Of a DNA stretch of 64,000 nt, positions 24,271 to 60,347 are shown one piece after another. The notes below the pieces were generated by a model. That model was not told where the DNA came from, made no database searches, and saw only the letters and a list, made by a program, of their open reading frames with translations. Within the stretch, counting starts at the first letter, position 1, and each line of letters opens with the position of its first letter. The position numbers and the translations under genes were made by a program. Source of the stretch: Epithemia pelagica (lineage: Eukaryota; Protista; Bacillariophyta); the NCBI GenBank assembly GCA_946965045.2, contig OX337229.1, forward strand, positions 682,001-746,000. Direction: 5' to 3'.

Positions 24271-24720
24271 TTGTTTTCAACCTCAGGCAACGTACCCTCG
24301 TTCGAGGCAATACGCTTTGGTCCCTTTGTGGTGCAATGGACTGGTGTCGGTGATAAAGTACTGAACAGAGCCAAACCTCTGTCCTCCGTCCACATCAACG
24401 GGTTCCGGGGAGCAGGGACAACAACTGAATTGAATCTAGTCGGATTGGCTTTAACAGAAAAACATAAAACTGTGTACTTCTTCGAGAATGCAGGATCGCT
24501 GAACCGAGAAGTTGTTATCAAGTTCGTCAAGACCCCGGCGAAGGACCAAACGGAGGCATGGCTTCTCATTGATGAGACCTGGGAGGAGAGATTTTCACCC
24601 TCCTTCTCAAGAACACGAGGACTTCTTAGAAGCACTCCATACAGGTATTTTGGCCAAGGAACCACAGTCTTTGCTTGGCGTCCAACAAACCAGGTCGAAC
24701 ACATCGTTGACTGCATATAG
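24271..24720 (+). CDS. Small unknown ORF; start unclear (the ATG at 24225 is in another frame)
   Basis: Open frame of about 170 codons from 24208 with protein-like composition, ending 19 bp from the convergent Kelch stop. Confidence 0.35.
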   Translation: MFSTSGNVPSFEAIRFGPFVVQWTGVGDKVLNRAKPLSSVHINGFRGAGTTTELNLVGLALTEKHKTVYFFENAGSLNREVVIKFVKTPAKDQTEAWLLIDETWEERFSPSFSRTRGLLRSTPYRYFGQGTTVFAWRPTNQVEHIVDCI

Positions 24721-24739
24721 CGCTTCCTTTGCACCGGAT

Positions 24740-25975
24740 TCAGTGCTTCTTGCGTCTGGTCCAGTGTTTTCGCTTGGGTTTTCGTTTGGGAATTCGTTTG
24801 GGTTTTCGTATGGGAATTTTGTGTAAAGACTTCAACCCTGTAATTCTTGGCAAAGACATCAACCCTGCAAACACTGCAGTGTTTCTGTCCATTAAGGACA
24901 GTGCTTCAAAAACCGTTTCTTCTTTGTAACCAGTCCTAACAGAAACAACTCCCGTGGACAAGGTCAACAAATGACATTCTGATCGAGGACAAGGGAATGA
25001 TGGCAGACTCCACATTTTATGTCTCTTGGTGTCAATGACTTTGACGGGACAGTCGCCTCCTCCCGCAACAACCAAACATGATCCTACTGTTGTAACGGCG
25101 TGGAAATGAGGGTGGCGATAAAAGTGGTTAGGGAAAATGTTGTGGTGTACCTTCCACAAAGGCTCCCTATGGAAATCAGCGACACCTGACTGGTCTTCAT
25201 CAAATTCCCAAGATTGCATAGTGTCACGATGTCGCCCTGCCTTAAGACAATAGCCACTACCAACGGCATAGACCCGGCGACCAATGACTGCCATTCCAAA
25301 ATTGTCTATCGTGTCAGCCAAGCGTGGACCGCAAGTGACAACGTGCTGATCGTGCACTACCGTGTCAATGATATTGACCGTTGAACTTACGCGGATGAAA
25401 TTGGTCCCACCAGCGACCACAATAAAGCGATTCCTCACAACAGCAGCCGCACATCCGCTTGTTGTGTCGGACAATCTACATTTCAAGGTCGTCCAACACT
25501 TTTTTTCTTCATTTGTATTCATTGTTGTTTCAAGCAAATCTGTTATGGTAATCTTCTCAATCCCACTAGATTTGATAAGACCGTCATATGTCCCTCCGAT
25601 GACATAAATGCTTCCATTGCAGACAGCACTAGCATGTTCCGCTCTTCCTCTATTCATTCTTGGTGCTTCCTTCCACTGTGGGTTGCTTTCTCCAACGTTT
25701 AAATAACGCACAGAATCAAGCATCTTAAAAATACCGTCGGAGCATTTGCCCCCCAAAACAACTACAATTTCGTTGCTTTTATCATCAGGATGATGCGCGA
25801 CCACACAAGCAAACCCATGGAAACCAAGCTCGGGCCATTGCAATTTATGCCATAGTGGGTTTTCATGGAAACCAAGCTCGGGCCATTGCAATTTATGCCA
25901 TTGTGGGTTTTGAGTTTTGCTGTTATTGCCGACAAAAGCAAGTCCGGACAAGCTTGCTTGCTTTTGAATCGACAT
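24740..25975 (-). CDS. Kelch-repeat beta-propeller protein, copy 1
   Basis: GG-containing Kelch blades (VVLGG...W..APRMNRGRAEHASAVCNGSIYVIGG; FIVVAGG; VYAVGSG; LVVAGG). 48-bp internal duplication. Basic tail. Confidence 0.85.
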   Translation of the reverse strand: MSIQKQASLSGLAFVGNNSKTQNPQWHKLQWPELGFHENPLWHKLQWPELGFHGFACVVAHHPDDKSNEIVVVLGGKCSDGIFKMLDSVRYLNVGESNPQWKEAPRMNRGRAEHASAVCNGSIYVIGGTYDGLIKSSGIEKITITDLLETTMNTNEEKKCWTTLKCRLSDTTSGCAAAVVRNRFIVVAGGTNFIRVSSTVNIIDTVVHDQHVVTCGPRLADTIDNFGMAVIGRRVYAVGSGYCLKAGRHRDTMQSWEFDEDQSGVADFHREPLWKVHHNIFPNHFYRHPHFHAVTTVGSCLVVAGGGDCPVKVIDTKRHKMWSLPSFPCPRSECHLLTLSTGVVSVRTGYKEETVFEALSLMDRNTAVFAGLMSLPRITGLKSLHKIPIRKPKRIPKRKPKRKHWTRRKKH

Positions 25976-26578
25976 GATAAAGATCTGGGATCAGCAAATC
26001 GGATTTTTAGAACCAACGGTTCGTGCTTGGGAGCACAAAGGCAGAAAGTCCAAGCCGGAAACGAATAAAAGATCTCGTTTGGGCACACCTTTGTTGCAAA
26101 CCAGCGCTCTGGATGTTTCCGACGTCTTGCACAGCGATTGCAATGATCGCTTGATGATGAAGAATGAGAAGGAGGTGTCGAGGTTTAAAATTTCAAATGA
26201 TGTACTCCACTCACATCCATGTAGCTACCCCATTAATGCTACTCCTATCTCAAAGTAGCCGCAAAAGTTTTTCGTCTAATAATGGTCTATCTGCTGTGAC
26301 AAAAAGTTGCGATCGGATTTCAATTCTATAATTCGTCGTCGTGGACTCGATGTTCGCCATGTTCTTGCTTTCTGGATTTACTGCTTAGAACGAGCTATTA
26401 GTAAGTAGCCTGGATTTGGATCTCGTTCAGAAACCGGACAATCGTGGCCATTCGGGCTTCTTAAACTTTTTTCGCAGCTCCAACAAAGTTTCCCTCGGAC
26501 AACGTACATCGAAGCCCATAGCGTAAGGAGAACAGCGACTGAGTCAACCCGTAATGCCTAAGAGTCCATCTGTGAATA

Positions 26579-34299: not shown

Positions 34300-35245
34300 G
34301 ATGTTGGAAGGAGAGTTTGGAAATGATGTTCTTGTGGAATTGGTGAAACGAGATGCTGCAGGGGAAGGAAGGGGTCTTGTGGTGGTTGTTGTTGATGCTG
34401 CTGCAGTCGTGGAACCCTCTGTCGCAGTAGTAGGATTCCCCAACGGGTTTTCCACAGAGGCCGAGGACTGCGAACGAGCCGTCGATCCAAATGTCGACGG
34501 ACTTGGTGTCAAAACACTGAGAAAGGGAAACTGCGGAGGTGGATGCCAAGCAAGGTCTCCTGTTGCAGTCAATGTATGGTTGTTGTTGTTGCTGCTAGTA
34601 CGGCTGTTCTCCTCGTCCAGACCGCACGAGCCGCAAAAGTCTTCAAATCCAGACAAAATCTTGAAGGGTTTTCGAACACCAGAGAAGATCACACTAGAGA
34701 GAAGACTGGGAGGATATCGTTGCTCGAGTGTCTTACACTCGGATCAAGTGATGAGACAGATTCGTAACGATCAATGTAATCACAAACCTGCACCTTTTTA
34801 TGGGTCCATTGTCACATTCCACACCGCGAAAGACCCGATTCCACATCCGGGTACTATTGGTAGCGCCGGTGATGTCATCAAACGTGACTCAAGGGAGTCA
34901 GACTCAAAAAGCGCCTATTGTAACTTGCCCCAGCCCCAGCGGGGGTGATCGAGTCCCGCAGGCCTCAGTCGGAAAAAGTTGCGTGTGAGTAAGGCATTGC
35001 ACCTAATAGTGCGACTGACAGGGTCACCCCGCTTGGAAGTATCGTGTCTTCATCAAGTTGATCAAAGCAATCATTTTGTAATCGCTGTCGGAAGAACATC
35101 TCCAGAGCGCTGGTTGGCAACAACGGTGTGCCCAAACGAGATCTTTCATTCGTTCCCGGCTTGGACTTTCCGCCTTTGTCCTCCCAAGTTCCAAGCACGA
35201 ACCGTTGGTTCTAAAAATCCGATTTGCTGATCCCAGATCTTTATC

Positions 35246-36433
35246 ATGTCGATTCAAGAGCGAGCAAGCTTGTCCGGACTTGCTTTTGTCGGCAATAACA
35301 GCAAAACTCAAAATCCAGAATGGCATAAATTGCAATGGCCCGAGCTTCGTCTCCATAGGTTTGCTTGTGTGGTCGTGCATCATCCTGATGATAAAAGCAA
35401 CGAAATTGTAGTTGTTTTGGGGGGCAAATGCTCCGACGGTATTTTAAAGATGCTTGATTCTGTGCGTTATTTAAACGCTGGAGAAAGCAACCCACAGTGG
35501 AAGGAAGCACCAAGAATGAATAGAGGAAGAGCAGACCATACTTGTGCTGTATGTAATGGAAGCATTTATGCCATCGGAGGGGTTCATGACCTGTTTCGCG
35601 CATCGGATGGGATTGAGAAGATTACCTTAACAGATTTGCTTGAAACAACAATGAATGCAAATGAAAAGAAACAGTGTTGGACGACCTTGAAATGTAGATT
35701 GTCTGAACCAAGACGCGAATGTGCTTCTGCTGTTGTGAGGAATCGCTTTATTGTGGTCGTTGGTGGGTTCAATTCCATCTTCCAAGGTTCAACGGTCAAT
35801 ATCATTGACACGGCAGTGCACGATCAGCACGTTGTCTCTTGCGGTCCAAGCTTGGCTGACACAATAGACAATTTTGGAATGGCCGTTGTTGGTCGCCGAG
35901 TCTATGCCGTTGGTAGTGGCTATTGTCTTGGGGAAGGGCGACATCTTGACACTATACAATCTTGTGAATTTGATGAAGACCAGTCAGGTGTCGCTGATTT
36001 CCATAGGAAGCCTTTGTGGAAGGTACACAACAACATTTTCCCTCACCACCTTCATCGCCACCCTCATTTCCACGCCGTTACAGCAGTAGGATCATGTTTG
36101 GTTGTTGCTGGGGGAGGCGACTGTCCGGTCAAAGTCATTGACACCAAGAGACGTAAAATGTGGAGTCTGCCATCATTCCCTTGTCCTCGACACCAATGTG
36201 ATTTGTTGACCTTGTCCACGGGAGTTGTTTCTGTTAGGACTGGTTACGAACAAGGAACTGTTTTTGAAGCACTGTCCTTAATGGACAGAAACACTGCAGT
36301 GTTTGCAGGGTTGATGTCTTTGCCAAGAATTACAGGGTTGAAGTCTTTACACAAAATTCCCATACGAAAACCCAAACGAATTCCCAAACGAAAACCCAAG
36401 CGAAAACACTGGACCAGACGCAAGAAGCACTGA
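35246..36433 (+). CDS. Kelch-repeat protein, copy 2 (inverted paralog of 24740-25975)
   Basis: Nearly identical N- and C-termini to copy 1. Flanks are also homologous (about 35050-36540 vs 26160-24624). Confidence 0.85.
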   Translation: MSIQERASLSGLAFVGNNSKTQNPEWHKLQWPELRLHRFACVVVHHPDDKSNEIVVVLGGKCSDGILKMLDSVRYLNAGESNPQWKEAPRMNRGRADHTCAVCNGSIYAIGGVHDLFRASDGIEKITLTDLLETTMNANEKKQCWTTLKCRLSEPRRECASAVVRNRFIVVVGGFNSIFQGSTVNIIDTAVHDQHVVSCGPSLADTIDNFGMAVVGRRVYAVGSGYCLGEGRHLDTIQSCEFDEDQSGVADFHRKPLWKVHNNIFPHHLHRHPHFHAVTAVGSCLVVAGGGDCPVKVIDTKRRKMWSLPSFPCPRHQCDLLTLSTGVVSVRTGYEQGTVFEALSLMDRNTAVFAGLMSLPRITGLKSLHKIPIRKPKRIPKRKPKRKHWTRRKKH

Positions 36434-36540
36434 ATCCGATGCGAACGAAGCGCGATATGCAGTCAACGATGTGTTCGTTGGACGCCAAGCAAGGACTGTG
36501 GTTCCTTTGGCCAAAATACCACTATCGAGTGCTTCTAAGA

Positions 36541-38407
36541 TGTTTTAGGGACAGGCCGCAGACCATTGCCCTTCCCAACGGCAAAGAGCTCTTGTCCAAT
36601 ACAAGTATGGACATTCAAAAGGGCCATCGCTATGGATTGATTGGAAGAAATGGGGTGGGAAAGTCATGCTTGCTTCAACGACTGGCCCAAAAATCCATTC
36701 CAGGCATGCCACATGACATGCGTGTTTTGCTGGTACAACAACAACTCGCCGGCAGTAATGAGACACCACTGCAAGTTCTACAAAAGGCAGACGTCCATCG
36801 CGTACGACTGTTGCAAGAGCAACAAGAGCTGGAAACACTGCTCGAAACAATGGACGATTTGTCGCAGACGGAAATTACCAACACGGCAGAACGACTGGGA
36901 GCTATTGCCCAAGAACTCGACGCTATGGATTCCGACAAAGCCCAAGAACGGGCCTTGGCAATTCTGCGAGGCCTCCAATTTCCTCCGGACTGTTGGAGGC
37001 ACCCACGCACACTCTTTCGGGTGTGGCTGGAGGATGCGATTGAGCCTGGCACGAGCACTCTTTGTTCCAAGCGATTTGTTGCTCTTGGATGAAGTATCGA
37101 ATCACATTGACCTCGCCGGTTTGGATTGGTTGATTCGATATTTGCAGCAAGATCGCCAACGCACCATGATCCTTGTATCGCATGACCGATCGTTTCTGGA
37201 TGCGGTTTGTACAGACATTCTTCACATGAATCACCAGGTGTTACAGTATCATCCGGGAAACTTTTCCGAATTTGAACGTCAGCAGGAACAAAAGTCGGCT
37301 CGACAAGCACAAATCCTCAATGCCTCGGAACGACAACGAAACAAGTCAGAAGCATTTGTCCAGAAACAACAAGCCTTGGCTCGCAGCAAGTCTGCGGATC
37401 CCAACAAGCAGAGACAAGCCAAGATGATCAAGGACAAGAAACTAGATCGAATTGGGAATTACAGGGAAGATGGCAAAAGGTACAAACTGGATGAAAAGAA
37501 TTTGCGGCTGGCACAAAAAGTCACAATCGAAGTGGACGAGCCAATCATAAAGATGCATTTTTTAAACCCGACATGGCCCATTGGGATCGCTCCCGATGAT
37601 GTCATTGTACGAATGGAAAAGTTCAGCTTTGGCTATTCGGACAGTAGCAACAAGATCCTCCAGAGCAATACGCTTAGCCTAATTCGGGGAAGCAAGGTGG
37701 CGTTGGTTGGCAACAACGGATCTGGGAAATCAACCCTCATGCGTCCGTTTGCACAAGATATCAAACCATCGGATTACAGCTTGAGCGGCGAGTTTTGGCA
37801 TCATCCAAACATCAGGGTTGGACACATGACCCAATTCTCCGTAGAAGAGATGGAACAATATGCACATCAAACAGTTGTGGAGTACGCCGAAGAAAAGCTA
37901 CGATCCTGCAAGGCCTCGGCGAGCATTGTCGCCAAGGCATCGGGAAACATTCGACAGTACTTGGGAGCATTTGGTCTGGGAGGGAAGCACGCGTTGCAGC
38001 CCATTGGGAAACTTTCTGGAGGTGAAGGAATGCGACTTTGCTTTGCAGCAGTTTTGGCGGAGGAGCCCCATTTGCTATTGCTGGATGAGTCCACGAACCA
38101 TTGTGACTACGAAACTCTCGACTCCATGTCCAAAGCGCTAAATGAATATCAAGGATCCGTTCTGATGGTCTCTCACAACCAGGGATTCTTGAGCGGGTTC
38201 TGCCAAGAATTGTGGGTGCTCCAAGAGGGTCGTATAGCGGTCAACCACAGCGATACAAGCACGTTCGATGAACTCTTTTCCGATTACCGATCAGCAGCAA
38301 CATGTTCATCTTCTAAATTGGAAACTCGCCGTCAACAAAACGTAAACATGGCGAAGCGTGCAGAAGTCCAACGAGCCAACGCAAAGCAGAAAACGGCATT
38401 GGTGTGA
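36541..38407 (+). pseudogene. ABC-F family ATPase, 5'-truncated and frameshifted
   Basis: Walker A GRNGVGKS and GNNGSGKST, LLLLDE motifs, no TM segments. Two frameshifts (about 36990 and 37020) break the first LSGGWRMR signature. No native start. Confidence 0.8.
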
Positions 38408-45587: not shown

Positions 45588-48500
45588 ATGGCTACGGTAG
45601 ACGACTTATCACTAAAGCATCTACGTTTGCAGACGTTCGATGGAAAGCATGAAAATTTCCAAGTTTGGTTCATGAACTTTCGTTCATATGCAGTGGCGCA
45701 TGGATTCAAGTCGGCGATCAGCAAAGATGGGCCTGACACTGACTTGCCTTTGCGGGATGATTCACCTCTTGATACCGATGCAACGGTGGCTGGAAAACAA
45801 GCTTTGGCCAAGAAGAAGAATGCGGCAGCCTTTTGTGCCTTGAACCTTGCGATGACGAGCCCTCAAATGATCCGAATGTTGACTGAAGCTCAGACGGATG
45901 AATGGCCCGATGGTTTGGCCTGGAAGGTGATTGCTGCATTGCACAAGAGATTCAAGCCGACTGACACTGTATCAAAGATCGAGATGCGAAGGTTGTTGGG
46001 TAAAGTGGCCATGACCAAGAAAGAAGATCCAACTACTCTGTTCAGCCAAATTGGGCAGATTGAAAATATGTTCAACGTGACGGTTGATGATGAGGAGAAA
46101 ATTGCGATCGCGATTGAAGCAGCTCCGCGAGAATACCAGTCGATTATTGTGTCAGAACAACGCCAGCGGGGTTCAACATTGACGTCGGACCACATCGAAG
46201 ACGTTATGCGGTTGCACTGGCGCGCACTTTATGGTCAACGCACCAAGAATTTCCTGCAAGACGACGGAGACGACGACAACGAGATTGGTCTCGCAGCTGG
46301 AGACAAACAAGGTTCAACGTCAGGAAAGTCCAAGTCAAGCAAGAAAAGTGGGAAAGGTGACGGTAAGAAGACTTACAAATTCAAGGGCAAGTGCCATCAT
46401 TGCGGAAAGGTTGGTCACAAGGCCGCAGACTGCTGGATAAAACCCGAAAACAAAGACAAGAGGCCCGAATGGTACAAGGTCGAGGAGCATGGCAAAGTGG
46501 CAAAGGACAGTGGTGAGACGGATGGCGAAGGCAGCGTTGAAATCATCACTTGTGCGGTTGACTTACCTCCATTGGTTCCTCGGAACATGGTATGGTTAGA
46601 TACCGATGACGAGGACGAACACAACGAATACGAAGAACTCCCAGACTCGGTGCTCGATCACGAGATCGTGAGCGACACCGACGACGAAGAGACAAGAGAC
46701 GACGATGGAGACCTCGATTGGATCAGTTTGTTGGGTGAAGAGGACGATGAAAGCATCGACGACTCGTTGGTTGTTGTATCAGATGGCGAAGAAGATGAAG
46801 TGGACAGGGAGATTTGTTGTGCCGGTATGGCCAAGGGAATGGAATTCCCAGCCATCCAAAGTCTCCTGACAGATCCGAATGTATGGATCGCAGACACAGG
46901 AGCGACGACGCATATGACTCCGTTTCGCGTCGGAATGGTTGATGTGAAGAAACAACATGATGAGAAAGGGATCACCATGGGCAACAATAAAACAGAAAAG
47001 GTCGTGGAAGTTGGCAACTTACCTGGAGTGTTGCACGACAAGAATGGAAACGCGCTCAACCGTGTAAAGATGCAAGACGTCAGCGTGGTTCCAAGCGGTG
47101 GTTTCAACCTGTTCAGCATCACGAAAATGCAGATGAGTGGATGGAAATTGGAAGGAGACAAACAGTCGATCCGACTTACCAAGAATGGGCAGGAGATCAT
47201 CTTCGATATCAAGATCCAAACGCCCAAGGGAGTGATTTTTGCCGCGTATTTTGAAAGGACCGAGTTGGGAAACGCAGCAGCAACAAGCGAAGAACAAATC
47301 AAGATGACAATGGAACAGGCTCATGAGAAACTGGGTCACATCGGAGAGAAAGCAGTAATCGAAACAGCCAAGAAACTCGGATGGAAACTCACCAAGACAA
47401 CGATGCCAAAATGTGCAGCTTGTGCAGCTGGGAAGGCAAAACAGAAGAATTTGCCGCGAAATGAGAACGGAGAAGATGAAAGAGAACATGATGACGAGAA
47501 GCAACTTCGTGCTTACCTGGACATGGCTTCGATCAAGAAGAAGCCAGACATGCCAATTCCGTCGAAGCCGCAGTGGAGAATCTTGGTGGTCCATCCGAAA
47601 ATCCAGCTCAAGCTTTCCGAGTTCTATGATGCGAAAGATGAGATGCCAGAGGACACATGTGAGAAAATGGCATTGATGAAACAACATGGTGTGTCCATCA
47701 CTCACCTTCGGTTGGACAATGCAGGCGAGAACAAGGCCTTGCAGAAACGGTGTCAAAATGAAAAGTGGCAACTTGGAATCCATTTCGAGTTCACTGCCCG
47801 TGATACACCCCAGCAGAACTCTATCGCTGAGGTGGGATTTGCTACCGTGATGAATCGAGCACGTGCGATGATGCACCGTGCAAATATCCCCATCGAAATC
47901 CGCTTCAAGTTGTGGCACGAGGCTTGCATGACGGCAACGCTTTTGGACGGCTTGGTTGTTGTGGATCATGGGGGAAGATCTGCGACTCGATACGAACACA
48001 TTTGGGGGAAAGTGCCATCGTTCGCGGAACACTTGCGAGTATGGGGGGAAGCCGGAACGGTCAAGATCAAGACTAAAACTTCCCCCAAATTAATGGACAA
48101 AGGTGTACATTGTTTCTTCGTTGGGTATGCACGTAATCATCCGGGTGACTGTTATCGGATGTTTGATCCCAAAACGGGTCGTGTTCGGGAATCACGCGAC
48201 GTGACTTGGCTAAAGCGGCTATACTACAAGAAACCTCCTAATGCCAAGGAACTACAAACCAATCCAGTCGTGGATGCTGAGGCTGCATCGAATCACGGGG
48301 AGAGTCGCGGAAGTGGTCGCGAAAACGATGGCCAAAACGACCATGGCGGAAACGACGGCAATGTGGACGACAACAACTCCAACAACGAATATGAACCGGA
48401 TGATCCGATGCCTGAGGTGAACGTGAGCACAGGCAATGACGAATCAACTGCTCCAGTGCGGAATATTGTGATTCCGGAGCCTGATGAAACAACGACGACG

Positions 48501-50229
48501 CGAACAGGTCGTACCGTACGAGCACCACAACGGTTGATTGCTGAGATTGGACAAGTCGTGCTGTCCAAAGCAGAACAGAATTACTACCATGCCCTTCAAG
48601 CATTGGACTCTGATGCCGATAGCTTTCTGGATGAAGAATTGGCCATGGTGGGTGCCGGATTGGGGCAAGGCATCACGAATACAAAAGAGCTCAAGGTGAT
48701 GACCTTCGATGAGGCAATGGCCCAAGCCGACAAGGATGCATGGGTGAAGTCAGTTGATGAGGAACATCAACGCATGATTGATTGTGGCGTCTGGGTGCCC
48801 ATTCGGAAAGAAGATTTGCCTCCCAATTGCGACATCATCGATTCGACTTGGTCTATGAAGAAAAAGGCCAGTGGAAAGTATCGTGCTCGTTTGGCAGCTC
48901 GGGGTTTCAAGCAACGCGAAGGAGTGTCGTACGACCGTGATGATTTATTCGCACCGGTGGTCAACGAACTCACCGTGAAAATTGCCTTTGTGATGATGAT
49001 TTTGGCTGGGTGGTACGCTCATTTAATGGACGTTAAAGGGGCTTTTCTAAAATGTGGTTTTCGATCTCAACACAAAGTGGCAATGGAAGTCCCAAGAGGT
49101 TTTGAGAAATTCTATCCCTACGGTTGGTTGTTGCTTCTGTTGAAGACGCTCTATGGATGCAAGCAAGCCGCTAAGATGTTTTGGGAATTTCTGTTGAAAT
49201 TGATGCAGAGTATGGGCTTTGATCGCAGCAAAGCCGACCCTTGCTTGTATTTTGCTTGGACGCAATTTGGGCTTATCTTGTTTCTATCCTACATTGATGA
49301 TATGATTCTGATGGGCAATAAAGACGGAGTTATGCATTTCCGTGAAATCTTCAAGGGAAAGGTTGATGTTGATGATATTGGACCGTTGGATGAATATTTG
49401 GGGGCCAAGATTGAATTTTGTACTGAACAACGCACAGTCAAAATTACCCAACCAGTTCTTCTTCGCAGCTTTGGGGACGAATTTGGAGTGGGGGAGGGTA
49501 CATCGAAAACACCTGCTGTACCACACAGTACACTACAACCTGGTGATGAGAGTTCGCGTTTGGATGCTAAGGGCACATTTCGAGTTCGGTCCGGGATTGG
49601 GAAACTGTTGTACTTAATGAAATGGAGTCGCCCTGACATTTCAAATGCCGTTCGGGATTTGAGTCGGTTCATGCAGGAACCTTCTCTTGCGCATGACAAG
49701 GCAATGCGACGCTTGATGGAATATTGCGTCTCAACCAAACAGCGCGGTCTTTTGCTAAAACCAGAGGGACAGTGGGATGGAACAGCCGATTACGAGTTTG
49801 AGATCAGCGGCCGTTCAGACAGTGACTACGCGAAACAGCACGATCGCAAGAGTGTTAGTGGAATTTCGGTGTTTCTCAACGGTGCACCTATTCAAACGAA
49901 AAGCAAGACTCAGAGCATTATAACCCTGAGCGTTACGGAAGCCGAATTGGTGGCTGCTGTGGACTGTGTGCAGACGATGTTGTTCGCTCGGCAAATTATT
50001 CTCAGCATGGGGCTTAAGGTGAAACTACCCATGCTACTTGAAATGGACAACAAAGGGGGGAAAGATATCATCAATTCGTGGGCAGTTGGTGGTCGGACAC
50101 GTCACATTGATGTCCGAATGTTCTTCCTTCGAGAACTCAAGGAAGAAGGAATTCTCAAATGCAACTGGATCAGCACTGACGACAATTCTGCGGACCTCTT
50201 CACCAAGAATCTTGATGGTCCCACCTTTG
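45588..50229 (+). mobile_element. Ty1/Copia retrotransposon B: uninterrupted gag-PR-IN-RT-RNaseH ORF, truncated at the very end of RNase H
   Basis: CCHC knuckle CHHCGKVGHKAADC, WIADTGAT, HEKLGH..CAAC, LRLDNAGE, TPQQNS, MDVKGAFL, YIDD, SDSDYA, TEAEL, SADLFTK. No 3' LTR. Confidence 0.95.
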
Positions 50230-53200
50230 GACATGAACAGACACGGGTCAATGTGTTCCTGCGATTTGAGTCCGACTTGTTCCAATTTGCTTTTCAGATG
50301 AAGGAAGAAATTGCGTGGTGCCTGCTTTAGGCCATACAACGATCGTGTAAGTTTCAAGACTTTCCCTGGTTGCGCAAACCCTCTCGGCATCTCAACATAT
50401 ACGCCACTTTTCTTTTGTTCTTCTTCTGTCATCTTGTCCCAATTGGGATCCTTGTCAATCGGCGCATGTACAAATGCTGCCGTGTAATCAACTTGTACCG
50501 TGGACAGATTCAAAATGATGGAAAGAATCATCATCAGGCGCACAGTCGTCCAATTCACAACGGGTGCAAACGTGTCGAAGAAATCGACTCCTTCGACTTG
50601 TTTGTCCCCCCGTGCACAAAACCGTGCTTTCAATTTGCGTACGGATCCATCGGGATACCGTTTGCACTTGAACGCCCATGTGCCAGGTAAGACATTCATC
50701 CATGTCTCTCTTGCCACGACTTCCCATGCTTTCATCTTCTCATGAAGCGTGTTGTATTCTTTCTTGCAAGCCTCCCAGTACCCGTCTTTATCGGGACCGT
50801 TCATGGCTTGTTCCCATGAGGGATTGTCTGCAGCATCGGCCTTGGTTGCCAATGCCATAGGATGCATCTCTTCAATCCAGCGTGTGTCCGGATCTGTATG
50901 ACGATCCAGCCACAAATCCATGGCCAATAGGTCTTTGGATTTGGACGCGATTGCGCTGGTCAGAGTGTCCCAGGTAAGGGATTGGAGGAACTGTGCATTC
51001 AACAGCTCTCGTCTCACTTTTTGCTTTGGCCTTGTTGACCCACGAGGAAAGTAAGCAGTCGATGCCCACAATCGCTCATCGAACAAGTGACGATTGGGAC
51101 GACGTTCTCTTTTGCCTCTTCCATGTGATTCTGGATCGGGTTCGGCAAAATGCCTATTACGGCGTTCAATCTCTTCTTGTCGTGTCGTGCTGTCATCGTC
51201 TGAGTCGTCTTCAAAAACGATCTCATGTTCTTCCTCGTTGGCTTCTCCCTCTGGAGGCAACAATTCACTATTTGGAGCTCCCTCTGGAGGCAACAATCCA
51301 CCTGTTTGATCTTGACTTGACAGTTCACCGGGTGCTGCAGGTGGTTCTGGTCCTTGCCCTTGCTCTGTTGGCTGTTCCAGCGGAGGTTGGAATCGAACAT
51401 GGTTCCTTGTAGCGCGCCCTCTCCCCCCGTCAACAGACGTGGGAACAGGAACAATGGGCAAAGGTGGGGTGGGCAATGGACGAGGAGGACGTGACTGACG
51501 TCGGGCATGCCGTTCGGCGATTTCGGAATCGGTCATCCACTCGTCTCCAAGCTCCAAATTACCATCATCATCATCTTCGTCAGGCAGGTTAGATTCAGTG
51601 CCCGCCGCTAGCAGACGTTGCCAAAAGTCACCGTTCAAATTTGGCTCATCGAAAAGTCCGCCGGAATCGGCATTAGGAACCGTAGAGAATAAATCATCGT
51701 AGACCACATGATACTGTGAGCTGATGATTCCTGAGCAAAAATTGAGTATGCGACCAACAGTAGTAGAATGGTCGGGTGAGATCCCAAGAAACTGACCACG
51801 TCGTGCCTTGGCTTGCCATTTAGGCAACTTCTTGCCGTCTTGAAGCTTGGGGTCCAGGACATACACAGGACATCCCCAAACGTGACTCCGCTGAAGGTGG
51901 TGAAAATCGGAGAATGTGATGCCAGAGAAGATTTCGAGTGGAGCGATGTTCGTCCGGCGATTCGGAAGGTGGTTCCATAGCCAGACGGCGTGCTCAACGG
52001 CAAAAGGCCAAAGATGCAAGTGCATTTGCTCGGGCCAGTGAATGGTCGCGTGTAGTAACATAGTACGGGCCCAAGACATCGTGGTCTTTACTGCCCTTTC
52101 CGCGACTCCATTCTGGTGATGTGCCCCAACGCCTGAAAAGCTGATACGTTGACCACTTCCGTGTACATGGTTCAGAAATTCTTCTCGGCCAAACGGAGCA
52201 TTATCGGCGCGGTACTCTCGTATCTTGACACCGTATTCATCCGCGAACCGCTCAAACTTCTTCTTCGAACTGATCGTCTCACCAACTCGAAGGGACACTT
52301 GATTCGCCAAGAAGATCATGCCAGAGGCATGATCGACAAACAGAGTCCCCCCTCTATACTGTTCTTCGGTCCTCTCTTTGCCATACGTGTGAGGAAGACG
52401 GCCACGAATCGTGGATTCGTATTGATCAATCGAAACACAATCTCCTGGTTGAAGGTGCTCCCTCTTGAGCATACTGTCTTTCCCATCCACCAATCCACCG
52501 TGATTCGAATGAGGCGTCCGGCGATGTTGCTTCCCAAGCATACAAGCTGCGCACAAAGGTATGACGCAACTTGTTGTCTTCGCTTCTTTTGTCTCCAGCA
52601 CTAACCGTCGACTGTTTGCTTTTGGATCTCGACAGAGCGTCTGTATCCATTGCATGTTGGCATGGCCAAGCTTCCAGTGCCACAGCAAGAGCTCCCTTTG
52701 CGATGCCGTCAAGTTCTGGTTAGTCTCGTCGGCCACATTCATCAAGCCACTGTGATTCGCCGTAGACAAGGCCGACTTGACGGAATATCCATCACCCAGC
52801 ATCGTTGCATCTTCGAAGGTAAGTCCCATGTGATTCACATTCCCTGTGAGCATAAAGGGAAGATTACTACTGGAGTTATATGGAAATTCTAACCATGTCC
52901 CATCCGGGATTTGCAACTGCGTTTTCTTGTGGTCGAGTACCAGTTTTCCAGCTTGCTGCTCTTGAAAGAACGTTTGCGGGCTGAACAAGCGAATCGAGGC
53001 TTCTGGTACGTAGTATGCTTTCGTCTTGATCGTTCGAGCTACCCCCATAACGTCTCTAACCATCCATTGAACCATGCCAAAACCTCGGACTGCTGTCGTT
53101 CCAGACAATCCATTCAACGATGAGATTTCGGCCGGTTGAATTGGTCCGACGAAGTCTTGGAGATTTGGCGTCAATGATTTGGATGCTCCGGAATCGATCA

Positions 53201-54017
53201 CAATGGGGAGCACATCTTGTTCTCTTTGGCTCATGTACACCGTCATGCGACGTGACAATTCGCCAATGGTCTCACCATTCAAACCAGAACAATCAACCTG
53301 GTCCAACGGGACAGTGACGGCTTGAAAACTTTTCAGTTGTCCAAAATTGGCTGCTGCAACCATGCTTTGTCGCAACATCAGTTTCCAAGGGGTCTTTCGT
53401 CTTGTAAGGTCAGCTCCAAGCCACGCCCCATGACTCAACAATTTGATTGTCTGCCACTGACGAACTGGATCAACTTGTGGTATCAAGGAAACGTCCTTCA
53501 GGGCCAAACTCCAAAGCGACAATCCACCAAAGATTTGGTTTCGAAGAATCTTCGTCGTGTCGTTTGTCGCTCCCTCTGGAGACGACGTTCTCGGGTTGGT
53601 CCAGTTATCCCAGTCGTCCGTGTTGTACCAAAGACAAGGACGGTTGTTGCGCCAGATCACACGATGGACTCGACGTCTTACTTTCATTTTGAGGCCATAG
53701 GAGCGTACCGATTGTCTCAAACGAGGTTTCGGCGGTCTTGGTGGAGTGCTCACAGCATGAGCAGCTGTGGCTCCGGACTTGGAGTCTTGCTCGACCAAGC
53801 TCATGGCACAACAAAGGCTTATGAACAAGGCGAGATACAGTAGGAATAACCACGGCAGATAAAGCCAAAATAGGTCTCCCATCCCCCTCATGAGCGCACA
53901 GTCGAGTAAGGATGAGAAGATAGAGGTCACCCAGGTTTCCCTCCTGGGACCATAGCGATGATAGGGGCGGCCTACACCAGATGGACCGTCCAAAGACGCC
54001 ACCCAGCGGCCACCCCA
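50225..54017 (-). mobile_element. Copia C pol (linker-PR-IN-RT N-half), truncated in RT
   Basis: IVIDSGAS, WHWKLGH...CAAC, VSIDQY, YRADN, HHQNGVAER, FAPVVNW, VDYTAAF, SLYGLKQA, DPCLF. The YVDD motif and RNase H are absent. Confidence 0.92.
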
Positions 54018-55769
54018 TCAGGAGAAATGCTCCACGAGACTGCGGAGCGACTGATCGACGGAGCGTGCCACGTTTGCGACTGCAGCATCGAGCTCAGCGC
54101 GATTGACAGTAGAACCAGCCACAGTACCAGTCGCTCCAGTGAGCGTGCTGGTCGTGCTGGCGTTGTCGGCTCGCGCGGCATGAGCACTCGCATCTTGGTT
54201 GGAAGAGTGCGTCCGATCCGGAACCCAGCGATGCATGCGATGGTTGTAGAACATATGTTTTCCATCGATCACGCGTCGATTTCGCTCGTCCGACTTTGGA
54301 GGCGCCCACTTTCCGGATACACCACCTGTTCCAGAATTTGAGGAACTCGTCCCATTGGCTGCCTTCTTCGAACCAAACTTCTCTTTGTTCGCAGCAATCT
54401 TCTGTTCGTTGCGGGGTTCCGTGCACTTCGGTGCCGTATGTCCCGGCTTTCCACAATTCCAACAAATTGGTTGGGGCTTGCCATTGCCAGAAGAGGCAGT
54501 ATTGGCAGCTTTCTTGGCATCTTCTTGGGCATTGAACACGGAGTTCTTTCCCTTCGTTTTAGAACCGTGCCAGTCATTGCTGCTGCATAATTCATTATAC
54601 TTAGTTTCGGCTAAGCGAAGTAGAACATCAACTTCCAAACCACCAGTGTCATCAGGATCCCCTTGAAGTTTCCCAATGTCCCGTGCCATTGTGTAAGTTT
54701 GCTCGATATAGGGGAAATAAGAGTTAAATTTGCCAACGGATGAAGTTTGCATGACCTTTAGCACTTGCTGATTAAAGCGCTCTGGAACTTTCTTGACCCA
54801 TTTCAAGCGCTTGTGTGCACCACGGATCAAACTTACAACACGAAGAACATTTTCACCTTGAAACTCATTAATCTTCAAATTCTTAACCAAATCTTTCAAG
54901 TGATCAATAGCGGCTTCCGAACTTGAAACCAGGATGTTCATCATAATGACGAAGAGCAGAGGACCCCCTTGTTGAATGGTAGGGTAAGTCTCAAACTGTT
55001 CGTAGCATTTTTCAAACAGACTTTGAGTCATGTTATTTTCCAGATGCTTGTAGGTTAGTACCAAATTCTCCCGGTACCAATCCTTCTTGGTCCAGCGGCG
55101 ATACCATTCACAACTTGCTGCAACTTCATCAGGAGTAACTTCCTCATAATTTAAATATAGATCTACAGTACGAGACTCGATACTCCGGGATCCCTTCGAC
55201 TTGGGGAACACAATCGTGAACACATCATGCATATCATAAACCATATGCGTGTCCTTGGTCTTTGAAATCATGATGGAAGTGTTGTAACACTCATCCAATT
55301 TCTTTTCATCGGTCAAACTCATACTCGTGAAAGTATATTTCGTTTGCGATGTCTTCACGGCTTCCTTGAAGAGATCTTGCTTCTTCTCCGAAGACATTTT
55401 CTCCCTGTTCTCTTTCCGATATAGAGGTCCTTGATCCGCGACACCATATCCCCTTGAACCTGGTTCCACCAGTTCAACTGCCAGTCCCCCAACCATGAAT
55501 TGGGTATCTGTATCTAACGGGTAGTCATCGCTCTTTGAACTCTTATCCGAATTGTTTTCATCGCTTGTTCTTCTTTGTCTTCTCTCATTAAGACCCTGAA
55601 GCGTTTCGTCGAGTGTTCGGAATCCAAAGTCGGATTCTCGATTGTCGGTTCCAGTCTGGTCTTCCGCTGAGGCGTCTTGATAGTCCTCATTGTCTCCCGT
55701 GTTAGCCGGTGCTGCACCTGAAGCGGGTGAAACATTTGCCGAGTCTTCTGCTCGCGCCATTGTTCTCAC
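54018..55769 (-). mobile_element. Copia C gag
   Basis: 583-aa ORF with CCHC knuckle CWNCGKPGHTAPKC. Ends at a TGA that is in frame with pol. Confidence 0.9.
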
Positions 55770-55847
55770 CTTCTCTCTGTCCTATCTTGCCAGAGCACTC
55801 ACTTCCTTGACACCGTACGACCTTGGGAAACCTTCTACAGCGTAATA

Positions 55848-55862
55848 CTTGGGCTCAGAACC
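55848..55862 (-). other. Primer-binding site of Copia C (half-tRNA type)
   Basis: GGTTCTGAGCCCAAG directly after the LTR's terminal CA. Resembles the copia/Ty5 GGTTATG(G/A)GCCC tRNAi-Met anticodon-stem PBS with one substitution. Confidence 0.7.
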
Positions 55863-56099
55863 TGCGAGTAGTGGAAAAGAACTGCGGTCTCTTTCCCATT
55901 GAGCAATCCGTAAAAGGATACTTATTCTGATAATCACTATTATGTTAGTCCTAAATTCTCACTAAATTCACTTGGATCTTTTCTTCAATATCTTTTGGAT
56001 GAGTCATTCCATCCACTCGTTCACATTTACGTCGCTCATCATTCGTGACTGATGAGTCTTGTTGTCGAGTATAAGCTTGCTACCCCAGCTATACTCGCA
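55863..56099 (-). repeat. 5' LTR of Copia C (237 bp)
   Basis: Perfect 8-bp terminal inverted repeat TGCGAGTA...TACTCGCA, adjacent to the PBS. Confidence 0.85.
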
Positions 56100-56360
56100 G
56101 GAGGGAAGATCGGGACTGTTTCAAAGAAATTTTTAAAAGCGAACCTGAATCCATTCGAGCGTTTCAGGACTCAACTACCTTCTGATTCTTCGGGCTACCT
56201 ACCAAGGACTTCGCACAGTAGCAAGCCGAACTGAAAAAATAGGAGTAAGTCGATAAGCGAGGCGCAAGGTGCAAGCGCAACCCATTATTCCTTTTCCTGA
56301 GCCCATGAGGGATTCTGCTAGTTTAGATCTTCACGGGCAATGACACGGACAACCCTGTCC

Positions 56361-57960
56361 TTCAGGATTCAGGAATCAGGAATCAGGACCCCATCCCAGA
56401 CCCCCGAGTCCAGAGCAAACTCGGCCATCAACGCTAACTCCGTTCTCCGTTCAATGCAATTTTCAATGTTCTCAATGCAATTTTCGTGAAAACAAGAAAG
56501 GAGTGGCATGTAGAGGAATACTCTCTAGGGAAATCAGGATGGACAAGGCACAAGGGAGGTACTCCTAGCTCCTAATGCGTTCTTGGCCGAGAATCCCGAT
56601 TTCGTGGAACCCAAAGCCATGAAACTCTTCGAACTATCTTGTTCTCCAGTCTCCAGTCCCATATCTCTCTATAGACTATGGATATCGAGTCTAGAACATC
56701 GCATTCTGGTTCCTCCCTCTTTGTTAAAGATCTGTGCGAAATGCGAAGTGCGAACTGGAGAAAGCTGAGTGCTGCCGGCACTTTTCGGCATTATTATTTG
56801 TTGACCCTGTACAATACAAATAATAGAGTCTATTCCATGCGGAATGCGGACTTCGACCATGTGTTGGATGTTGGATGTTGGATGTTGGATTTGGATGTAC
56901 AGCGGCCACGGCGGATACGGATACTGAATACTGCACACTGCACTGGATCTGGATCCTATTCCCTATCCTATCTCTATACTCTATATCATATCCTACAATC
57001 TACAATAGATCGCATTACGCAATGGCCTACGCCCTACGCCTAACGCCTAACCTCTTACAAAAAAAGCCTAATCCTAGGAGTAACTCGTGTATCGCCTATC
57101 GCCTATTGTGGTCTATGATCTACGAGCTACGAGTATGATGACGTGGCCAACCCCTAACCCTACCTGTCTCTTCTTGCCTTCCGACATCCGACATTTTTTT
57201 CTTTTTGGAGTAGACTTTCAAGTACTCCTAGAGTAGCGAGTAGCGAGCAGTGAGTCTTCATTCAACAATGCGAACTTCAACTCTTCTATCAAGTAGTACT
57301 CGTTCCTCGTTCGAGTATTCCGTACTACGGAAATGATAGAAACCTCAGACATAGGACACATTAGACTCTTTTTGACGTTTGACCGTAAGGGCTAAAAGAC
57401 ACCTTCGACCTTCGACCTTCGACTTCGACAGCTACAGCCTACAACTATCATTCGTCATTCTACGAGCATTGGTTATTGGTTATTGTGTATTGTCTATGTA
57501 GGGATAACAGCGTTAAACATTTTAAACAACAATCGACATTGGGAATTGGGATTTGGGATTGGGGGTTGGGGGCTTGGCTTTGCTTGGCTCGTGGGAAACA
57601 GAAGAAACGGGACACCCTCTAGTTTGTCCTTGGATTCTACTGACTGGGTCACTTCTTATTCCTCATTCCATTGATCAAGTAGCAACTTACAACAGAAAAC
57701 AGAAGGCAATGCAACCTGATCACTGGTAACTCTCCATCTTTGCTGATCTCTCTACTAGCTAAGGTTACGGATCATCATCATCTCGTACTCCTAACTCCTA
57801 GGAGTAGACCGAATGATGGGGACGAAAGGAGTATTAGTATGTCCTTTTCCGATTTGCGATACACATGTAGGAGTACGAGTTACGAATAGGATAATAGTTA
57901 GCTCTTCAAATCCGACGGAACATCTCAAAAGGCGATCGTGACTCGTAACTCGTAACGTAC
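56361..57960. repeat. Non-coding tract rich in heterogeneous 7-bp (some 6-bp) tandem duplications
   Basis: At least 17 different heptamers repeated 2-5 times, e.g. TTCAGGA 56361, TGTTGGA 56862, CTTCGAC 57403, ATTGGTT 57468. Confidence 0.85.
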
Positions 57961-58728
57961 AAGCTACGCTACGAGCTCCTCGTGCAGGTCGGGATTCGGG
58001 ATGGGGGCACCCAATGTGTGAACACCTCATCACGATGGTCTTGTTGCCTCGATGAGTGAAGCATACTAGGTATATCGATATGGTTTTCGAAGTTTGATGG
58101 TCGAGGTATTTGGGGATTCCCCCAGTTCATAGTGGCCGCGTGAATCCATGCGCCATTCCATTGAAACAGCTTTTGAAGAAGGTGCCTTCGGTCGGCATCC
58201 GGCACCCAATCAACTGCAATGACAGGAGCAGAAAATGTCGTGTGTCCGAGTAGAATTCTACGTACAACGACTAGCAGAATCTTAGGCCAATCCTTTAGCT
58301 CGCAAGACCAAATCAAAATTTCGTCATTTTGCGTCACGTTGACGTCATATATCCGGGTAAAAGAGCATTTCCGGATTTGTTCCAACCAATCCAGAACTCT
58401 GGATTTGTTCGAACAAATCCAGGAAATTCATTAGGGATAGTGTTTAACTGATGCTAGTGTAGAGGCTGCCTACAGTTTCGAATATGTCAGGCGGGCGTTC
58501 GACATGGTGGGCGGGCGTGACACATGATGGACGGGCGTTCGACTTCAACGGTATCCTTGCGCTTCCTTAGTACCCAAAAGTTTTAGTATTCAATTTTTCT
58601 AAGTGAAGGGTGGGGGAGGATGGGGGACAGGATTCGAAAAGGCGCGGTCTTTTGGATTTGTTTTGCGCATGCGTAAGGACGGCGTTAGGCACAATTTCCA
58701 AAACCAAATCCGGCCCGGCCCCGCACGG

Positions 58729-58858
58729 ATTGGTTTTGTTGAGCTAAAGGATTGGCCTTATCCACAATGCGCGTGAGCATGGCCAGATCTTTGCGAAAAA
58801 GTTTGAAGATACCACTTATGTCTCACGCCTGTCACAAAGATTTTTTCCGGGCGCGAAA
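58729..58858 (+). promoter_or_regulatory. Candidate cell-cycle promoter motifs upstream of the cyclin gene
   Basis: ATTGG at 58729 and 58751, TTTGAA at 58802, GCGCGAAA (reverse complement TTTCGCGC, E2F consensus) at 58851. Confidence 0.4.
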
Positions 58859-59135: not shown

Positions 59136-60347
59136 ATGGCGTATCTTTTGGATCAACTCGAGACCATGCTGGAGCAGGAGGTGTCGGCCTATGCAACGGT
59201 GGATTACTTGGCTCCAAGCTACCAGCAACGGCTTTTGGAAGAGGAAGCGCCTCCACAGCCGGTCGATCGGAATCCGTCCGAGCCGATCGATTCCTCGAAT
59301 TCCAGCTCCACTTCTCCCACCGAGGTGTCAACTGCCCGCGACAGAACATGTGGTGAATCATCATCGTCATCTTCCTCTACTTCTTCCGGGGGAACAAGCT
59401 CCTCAGGAATCAACGAACTGTGGAGAGAGAAGATCTGTGAATGGTGTTATCAGGTTGTTGATCATTTTGACTTGTCAAGAGAACTAGTAAGCATCACAAT
59501 GCACTATTTGGATCGTTTTCTTGCCAAGCGAAGTGTCAACAAAAGATTCTTCCAACTGGCGGCCATGTCTTGCCTTTCCTTAGCGGTCAAACTTCATTCG
59601 GGTCCTTCCACAAGCGCTTCCATTCCTCACTACAAGATCAGTATGACGTCCATGCTCGCATTGAGTCGAGGATACTTTACCGTGAAACAGATGGAGGCCA
59701 TGGAGATGTCAATCATGTGGTAAGTTGTCATTCGGATTGAATCGATAACTTGTAATGAGGCGGGATCCAACATAAAATGACCAGCGGTATCACTTTCTAA
59801 CATGGTTTTGCGTTATTCCTTCTGTTTTTGCAGTACCTTGGGATGGCACCTTCATCCTCCTACGTCTCTCACCATGACCAAGCACCTTTTGTACCTGCTT
59901 CCGCTTCCGTCGGTGTCCTTCCAGCACCGCCACAATGTCCTGGAACTGGCCCGATTCCTCAACGAGTTGAGTGTCATTGACTACTTCTTTGTTCCCCATC
60001 GTCCTTCGCATGTCGCGCTGGCGGCTGTGGCCAATGCCATGGAGGAACTCTCCTCGGTTGTCTCTAGTGATGAGGATTCTCAAGAAGAAAGAGATTCGGT
60101 GGAGCTTCTCTCAGCTCTGAATCTCAACCTCGAGGATCCCGCCGTCCTGGAATGTCGCCATCGATTGCGACTCTTGTACGCTCAAGGAGGATATGCGGCT
60201 CCTCGACAGTCTGCGTCAGTACGAACAAGTGCCAACGGACAGAGACAACGTCCATCCTCCACTCCATCTCCCGTCTGTGTGTCCTATGGGACCACAAACT
60301 ACCGACCAGAATATGCCGAAAACAAGGACGAAATCGAATCCTCATGA
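59136..60347 (+). CDS. Cyclin (diatom-type cyclin, N-terminal cyclin box); intron 59720-59833
   Basis: WREKICEWCYQVVDHFDLSRELV..MHYLDRFL, FQLAAMSCLSLAVKL, ME..I...LGWHLHPPT, ARFLNELSVIDYFF. Confidence 0.9.

Follow-up and report, generated by a model that had tools for sequence, protein, structure and literature searches.

In a 64-kb stretch of the Epithemia pelagica genome (contig OX337229.1, positions 682,001 to 746,000; the window, below, means this whole stretch), we analysed a tract built from many different tandem duplications of exactly 7 bp. The tract, for which we used the bounds 56261-58002 (1742 bases, ~1.7 kb), is not a special locus and represents the dense extreme of a feature present in non-coding DNA across this genome. 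Judging from its sequence, it is probably an unconstrained spacer in which excision footprints of hAT transposons have accumulated, that is, a known kind of scar at an unusual density.

In a mechanical scan, 34 perfect, primitive 7-mer tandem repeats (doublets or short arrays) were identified in the whole window, and 25 of these lie at positions 56361-58002. The same scan found no perfect 8-mer doublet in this span, and only six doublets of 5-mers and four of 6-mers. First-order Markov simulations of the tract gave a mean of 0.08 7-bp doublets and a maximum of 1; an earlier sequence-only reading of this DNA had given a random expectation of roughly 0.1. Perfect doublets make up 22 % of the 1742 bases, and ~15 further 7-bp doublets carry one mismatch. 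Base identity within the tract is 0.423 at lag 7, 0.297 at lag 14 and 0.268 at lag 21, compared with 0.25 for the remainder of the window, and this drop indicates that the tract consists mostly of two-copy duplications and not of long arrays. The tract is non-coding, occurs once in the genome and has a GC content (0.456) similar to that of its flanks. A search of the tract against Rfam returned no match.

All 18 heptamer sites listed in the sequence-only reading were recovered within 1-2 bases of the positions given there, and five more doublets were added (ACTGCAC at 56930, CTCTATA at 56972, ACGCCTA at 57036, CTCGTTC at 57299 and TCGGGAT at 57989). Two of the listed sites are repeats of a different build: the supposed fourfold TTCAGGA at 56361 is TTCAGGA twice followed by ATCAGGA twice, and the fivefold TTGGGAN-type repeat at 57539 is a set of three overlapping doublets. 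The description of a constant period with a changing motif was accurate, as the repeated unit is a different one at nearly every site and usually occurs twice. Nearly every doublet likewise carries its own unit across a sample of 264 kb, composed of the window and twenty 10-kb stretches taken at intervals from contigs 1 and 2 of the assembly (60.5 Mb in 23 contigs). The analogy that had been drawn with the heptameric short tandemly repeated repetitive (STRR) sequences of heterocystous cyanobacteria does not hold beyond the period of 7 and the location in non-coding DNA. STRR are long bacterial arrays in which a small number of fixed heptamers recur over and over, while the units of the tract differ from site to site, are mostly present in two copies and belong to the nuclear genome of a eukaryote with TTAGGG-type telomeres.

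Regarding the duplication events themselves, 7-mers in the tract recur 25 times at a distance of 7 bp, never at 8, once at 9 and three times at 6, and therefore no filler bases are present at the junctions. Among the 125 doublets found in the 264 kb, run lengths were 14 bp in 77 cases, 15 bp in 23, 16 bp in 13 and 17 bp in three, with nine longer runs; 116 runs thus have two copies, and only six doublets reach three full copies. This distribution is that of an exact 7-bp duplication at random positions with extension by chance, so microhomology was not used. For this reason, the data favour blunt joining after fill-in or trimming of the ends and speak against slippage or microhomology-mediated joining. 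Several doublets overlap (57026/57036 and 57538/57546/57559); these are separate events at nearly one spot.

The feature is found throughout the sampled genome. The twenty 10-kb stretches contained 91 perfect 7-mer doublets (12 by chance) and eight 8-bp ones (3 by chance), and clusters of doublets were present in five of the twenty. After masking open frames of at least 150 codons and excluding the tract, 67 kb of DNA outside such frames remained, in which we counted 71 7-bp doublets where 4^-7 predicts 4.1; the enrichment was only 1.2-fold for the 5-bp class, 2.7-fold for 6 bp and 2.9-fold for 8 bp. In the same 67 kb, 7-mers were repeated 75 times at lag 7 and 5-16 times at lags 8-17 (~7-fold). 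The sequence-only reading had proposed comparing the tract at lag 7 with ordinary intergenic DNA. The tract does stand out, with ~15 doublets per kb, the highest density seen in the 264 kb and ~14 times the non-coding mean of roughly one doublet per kb, but ordinary non-coding DNA is itself strongly enriched at this lag. The doublets are clustered, with 55 spacers having none where 34.5 were expected. Their density between divergent genes is 0.66 per kb and is not lower in tandem or convergent spacers; we therefore rejected a hotspot at promoters or nucleosome-free regions. We also noticed four perfect tandem doublets of 9 bp (0.3 expected) and two of 10 bp (0.06 expected) in non-ORF (open reading frame) DNA, which could be scars of elements with a 10-bp target-site duplication (TSD) of the AcademH type.

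The doublets seem to be mostly young. In the 264-kb sample outside the tract, we found 47 exact perfect 7-bp doublet runs, compared with 5-10 at control lags, and almost no surplus of their one-mismatch relatives. As the perfect and one-mismatch classes should be about equal at mutational equilibrium, the near absence of a one-mismatch excess indicates scars that mostly stem from a recent burst or are quickly lost. A comparison of paralogous segments within the 264 kb, where few non-coding pairs were available, revealed one near-tandem 7-bp indel. The feature also reaches beyond the genome of E. pelagica. In 44 contigs of diatom-like organisms from metagenomes (L025-L068, retrieved via cyclin), doublet density was strongly dependent on lineage, from 8 per 14-18 kb in the rich groups (L028, L039, L040/L041 and L047) to 1 per 12-17 kb in the poor ones (L029/L030 and L054). 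Indels of at least 4 bp between alignable, near-identical metagenome contigs, mostly from the doublet-poor set L026-L036, included no 7-bp tandem duplication and showed no peak at 7 bp. In the literature, we found no report of 7-bp duplications or heptanucleotide repeats in diatoms.

The duplicated units are not random in sequence. They favour T at position 2 (0.39) and A at positions 6 (0.47) and 7 (0.40), and are poor in G at positions 1-2 and in C at positions 6-7. Within a set of 77 phase-resolved units, T at position 2 was combined with A at position 7 in 16, more often than any other of the 336 two-base combinations, and the strand mirror of this pair (T at position 1, A at position 6) was found in 11, with 4.9 expected for each. 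The combinations centred on the 7-mer were depleted, with five units for T1A7 and nine for T2A6, and a permutation keeping the column composition gave p = 0.0007 for the contrast between off-centre and centred pairs. Altogether, 26 of the 77 units fit nTnnnnAn in either trimmed register (9.4 expected, binomial p = 7e-7), a signal that is partial and of a purely statistical kind. As T and A lie five bases apart and off-centre in the 7-mer, the register points to a palindromic 8-bp nTnnnnAn target that has lost one terminal base.

Such a target is typical of hAT elements, which insert across 8 bp with the weak consensus nTnnnnAn and duplicate those 8 bp, and on excision the transposase makes a hairpin on each flank with a one-base offset. 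For Hermes and hobo, the nTnnnnAn target and the 8-bp TSD have been documented (PMC10368747, PMC11226609). Published hAT footprints mostly retain both target duplications minus one base, a form attributed to breaks that leave a one-base overhang and close to form the flank hairpin (PMC2921059), and the maize hAT element BTA leaves a footprint of 7 bp (PMC9881132). In the tract, an element would have landed across an 8-bp nTnnnnAn target and doubled it; on its exit, the flank hairpins would open at their tips or close to them, and the ends would be joined with a one-base overlap. The product would keep both target copies minus one base (ABCDEFG+ABCDEFGH or ABCDEFGH+BCDEFGH), which is a perfect 7-bp tandem duplication. 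Repeated landing and departure in one spacer could then produce many different, partly overlapping doublets, the few arrays of three or four copies would come from later slippage of a doublet, and the tract itself would have no function of its own. Serial excision footprints had already been suggested by the sequence-only reading and are favoured here, but the 7-bp TSD assumed there is not: an 8-bp hAT TSD minus one base fits better, because the T..A pair sits symmetrically in an 8-mer but not in a 7-mer.

The genome contains numerous candidates for the source of such scars. We found at least 134 Dimer_Tnp_hAT matches above the Pfam cut-off, many of them within open frames 1200-1400 codons long. 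Several groups of matches share the same score, which suggests numerous and young families. Many matches have a 15-bp terminal inverted repeat (TIR), CAGGGTNTGGAAGTC, at a distance of 3.2-3.9 kb. This TIR also bounds a 999-bp derivative at locus L018 (3556-4554) with an 8-bp TSD, TTACTCAC, that matches nTnnnnAn. One paralogous empty site of this derivative was found by pattern search, but its 2-bp difference is uninformative. Four copies of this ~1-kb hAT derivative (ends CAGGGTTTGGAAGTC), one of them the L018 copy, occur within 113 kb of contig 1 (432491-545599), and this cluster reflects either local hopping or copies of the larger element with a 10-bp TSD in which the L018 copy is nested.

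The exact step of 7 bp, the lack of filler, the overlapping events, the 8-bp register, the abundance of hAT elements and the genome-wide signal all support the interpretation as hAT footprints. Mostly young doublets are what currently active elements should leave, and differences among lineages are expected if each lineage's own transposons set the doublet density. The likeness to the footprints of known hAT elements (Ac/Ds, Tam3, hobo, Hermes and BTA) lies in the net gain of 7 bp and in the nTnnnnAn target; it is also drawn to the end-joined flank hairpins of those systems and to the clustering of their scars where elements land repeatedly.

Several observations weigh against this interpretation. 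Neither a hAT end nor a hAT-type element with an 8-bp TSD was found in or beside the tract, a search of the whole window gave no hAT end either, and the nearest hAT transposase match is ~98 kb away; unlike known footprints, the scars are recognised from sequence alone at a site where no element remains. The T/A rule applies to only 26 of the 77 units, so most of the signal is not explained by this degenerate consensus. We designed the register test with the single-position biases already in view, and in an independent set from the metagenome contigs (n = 32) the trend had the same direction without reaching significance (p = 0.16). Perfect 8-bp doublets are nearly absent. The single mismatches of the tract lie at the junction in eight of 15 cases (4.3 expected), but the complement rule for the junction base, the signature of a hairpin, holds in four of the eight, which is the chance level, and footprints with an exchanged complement base are thus not detectably enriched. 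With nearly all events being clean +7, hardly any +8 and few exchange products, the spectrum is narrower than that published for Ac/Ds. Finally, ~15 scars per kb demand a strong local hotspot, for which the hAT reading gives no cause. The local density, with ~25 perfect scars over 1.7 kb, exceeds anything that we found in the hAT literature, as does the excess across the genome.

The main alternative is a break-and-repair process apart from transposon excision, in which a nuclease or a topoisomerase- or recombinase-like enzyme makes double-strand breaks with a 7-nt 5′ overhang, and fill-in with blunt joining results in a 7-bp duplication; we consider it rather unlikely. It would account for the exact step without microhomology or filler, for the signal in non-coding DNA across the genome, and for the two thirds of units that fall outside the hAT consensus. 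It is disfavoured by the register, as a symmetric enzyme should prefer palindromes centred on the 7-mer, whereas the T..A pairs are off-centre and the centred ones depleted. To our knowledge, no enzyme with a 7-nt stagger has been described. Tyrosine recombinases cut 6-8 bp apart, and duplications of 2-4 bp have been ascribed to topoisomerase II. The latter resemble the process considered here in being tandem duplications of fixed length from a filled, staggered break made by a protein, but the tract differs from them in its 7-bp length and in a register that favours 8 minus 1. That the duplications are the signature of a lineage-specific activity of this kind (for instance, off-target cutting by a tyrosine recombinase, or a novel nuclease), and not transposon scars, is a claim we would make only with considerable doubt. 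If true, it would be a new mutational signature of fixed length that adds sequence to diatom intergenic DNA.

The simplest account of the 7-bp step would be a transposon family whose TSD is itself 7 bp long (for example P/Galileo-like or Dada-like) and whose excision, precise at the element ends, leaves both copies behind; Galileo-type elements offer a precedent for 7-bp duplications (PMC2775673). We nevertheless regard it as improbable. A TIR scan of the 264 kb yielded a single candidate flanked by 7 bp, with inverted ends of at most 11 bp; the same scan recovered elements with 8-bp and 10-bp TSDs. Moreover, the T/A register fits 8 bp, with both centred pairs under expectation, and known cut-and-paste elements rarely leave both duplications intact.

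Replication slippage, as a birth of heptanucleotide micro- or minisatellites favoured in this lineage, appears more improbable still, and the repair slippage proposed in the sequence-only reading is disfavoured by our data. A few arrays of three or four copies do exist (56862, 57401 and L017 7533), and the copy number of such arrays grows only via slippage or repeated hits. However, the great majority of runs have two copies, runs longer than 14 bp are not in excess, contrary to growth primed by microhomology, and the peak at 7 is sharp, with a modest excess at 6 bp and no 8-bp doublet in the tract. Slippage also gives no cause for a unit that differs at each site or for T..A pairs in a fixed register.

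A functional or structural locus (centromere-like region, replication origin, or an enhancer with heptamer sites upstream of the cyclin gene) had been suggested as well, and the position of the densest tract in 264 kb upstream of a cell-cycle gene would suit it. We judge it very improbable: the units are unrelated and hence share no binding motif, doublets occur throughout non-coding DNA with similar clusters in a quarter of the sampled stretches, divergent spacers are not denser, a GC content of 46 % is not low, Rfam gave no match, and a miniature inverted-repeat transposable element (MITE) separates the tract from the cyclin gene. An artefact of assembly or sequencing is barely conceivable, as similar doublets are present in the metagenome contigs from other diatom-like organisms, which were assembled independently, contigs of the E. 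pelagica assembly begin with telomere repeats, and long-read errors do not take the form of 7-bp duplications.

In addition to the doublets, the tract contains a second scar-like motif. The octamer TACTCCTA/TAGGAGTA is present in seven copies, compared with ~0.05 expected. In the 264 kb, TA-NNNN-TA octamers with CTAG, CTCC, CTCG or CTAC in the centre are 7-12 times over-represented; these are TACTCCTA, TACTCGTA, TACTAGTA, TACTACTA and their complements, and they were also found at L008 5040-5140 and, in chains of period 6, at L014 4830-5000. Fifty-two of 79 TA-octamers have a 7-bp doublet no more than 300 bp away, whereas sequence this close to a doublet amounts to only 15 % of the total; the association is partly due to the confinement of both to non-coding DNA. 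By their sequence, the octamers look like excision scars of Tc1/mariner-type elements, whose footprints consist of TA, a few terminal bases and TA, and the period-6 chains are what elements that repeatedly insert at TA and excise again should produce. Tc1/mariner footprints could account for the TA-flanked octamers, but not for the 7-bp doublets, most of which lack TA. The doublets, octamers and neighbouring elements are listed in the table below.

Table. Positions in the window of the 7-bp duplication tract, its repeats and the neighbouring features.
Feature	Position	Strand	Remarks
Whole 7-bp duplication tract	56261-58002		25 perfect, ~15 one-mismatch, single copy, GC 0.456
TTCAGGA ×2 (56361-56374) overlapping TCAGGAA ×2.9 (56369-56388)	56361-56388		
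CTCCGTT ×2	56438-56452		
TCTCCAG ×2	56643-56658		
TGCGAA[A/G/C] ×3	56735-56754		Copies vary solely at the junction base (edge-mismatch class)
ATGCGGA ×2	56837-56850		Unit matches nT....A
TGTTGGA ×4.1, then degenerate 6-bp copy	56862-56898		Longest array; probably extended secondarily through slippage
Near-continuous ladder of 5-, 6- and 7-bp duplications	56912-57051		In order: CGGATA ×2, ACTGCAC ×2, CTGGAT ×2, CTCTATA ×2, CTACAAT ×2; last members CCTACGC ×2 overlapping ACGCCTA ×2
TATCGCC ×2.4 (57090-57106) and CTACGAG ×2 (57120-57133)	57090-57133		
TCCGACA ×2 (57180), GAGTAGC ×2.4 (57231), CTCGTTC ×2 (57299)	57180-57312		
ACCTTCG ×3.3 (57401-57423, then 6-bp copy) and ATTGGTT ×2.6 (57468-57485)	57401-57485		
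Three serial overlapping duplications: ATTGGGA ×2, TTGGGAT ×2, TTGGGGG ×2	57538-57572		
AACAGAA ×2	57691-57704		
ACTCCTA ×2	57787-57800		Doubles a TA-CTCC-TA motif
ACTCGTA ×2.3 (57941-57956), GCTAC ×2 (57963), TCGGGAT ×2 (57989-58002)	57941-58002		Right end of the tract
Octamer TACTCCTA/TAGGAGTA, seven copies	56240-57875		Starts 56240, 56560, 57075, 57223, 57786, 57799, 57868
Copia-type retrotransposon with long terminal repeats (LTR)	50229-56099	-	RVT_2; left boundary, outside the tract
Tourist/Harbinger-like MITE	58282-58760		TIR GGCCAATCC..., TTA flanks
Cyclin gene	59136-60347	+	Two ORF pieces in one frame (Cyclin_N, Cyclin_C)

The sequence-only reading had placed the tract between an LTR and a cyclin promoter, and both neighbours were confirmed. 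The copia-type element, of which at least 12 other copies exist at 96-97 % identity, has its terminus (...CA) at 56099, and the tract is therefore outside it; being in addition single-copy in the genome, the tract was rejected as a repeated element. The element is the minus-strand member of two copia-type elements arranged tail to tail at 45588-56099, the plus-strand one being represented by the ORF 45588-50330. It lacks ~1.3 kb present past the left end in other copies, and is therefore truncated or interrupted there.

On the other side, the downstream neighbour of the tract is the cyclin gene, and the MITE in between, 280 bp right of the tract, was an addition to the earlier description. It is 479 bp long and has at least 25 copies in the genome with up to 97 % identity. 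We rejected its inverted repeat (58284/58758) as a hAT element, since it is that of a Tourist-like MITE with TTA flanks. The MITE contains a near-perfect 28-nt palindrome (58368-58425), and a mechanically called ORF overlapping it (57969-58385, minus strand) is probably spurious. The spacer of the tract has thus taken at least three other transposon insertions, namely the two copia elements and the Tourist-like MITE.

Elsewhere in the window, two inverted repeats of 1.2-1.5 kb (24621-26123 and 35087-36543) are 92 % identical and enclose ~9 kb with long ORFs; they may be the long inverted ends of a large element, or stem from a segmental duplication in inverted orientation. CCCTAA telomere repeats were present at all three contig starts examined. 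A telomere-like origin of the tract was rejected, as these telomeres are made of the 6-bp CCCTAA repeat.

If the tract and its genome-wide counterparts are hAT excision scars, perfect 7-bp doublets would serve as a counter of past hAT excisions that needs nothing but sequence. The observed frequency in non-coding DNA, roughly one doublet per kb and few of them decayed, would then mean a very frequent and recent turnover of insertion and excision. Transposon scars would account for a large share of the small insertions in the spacers of this diatom and would seed heptamer arrays, and certain spacers would act as repeated landing pads for several classes of transposons. The finding indicates no new cellular system and no function for the cyclin gene.

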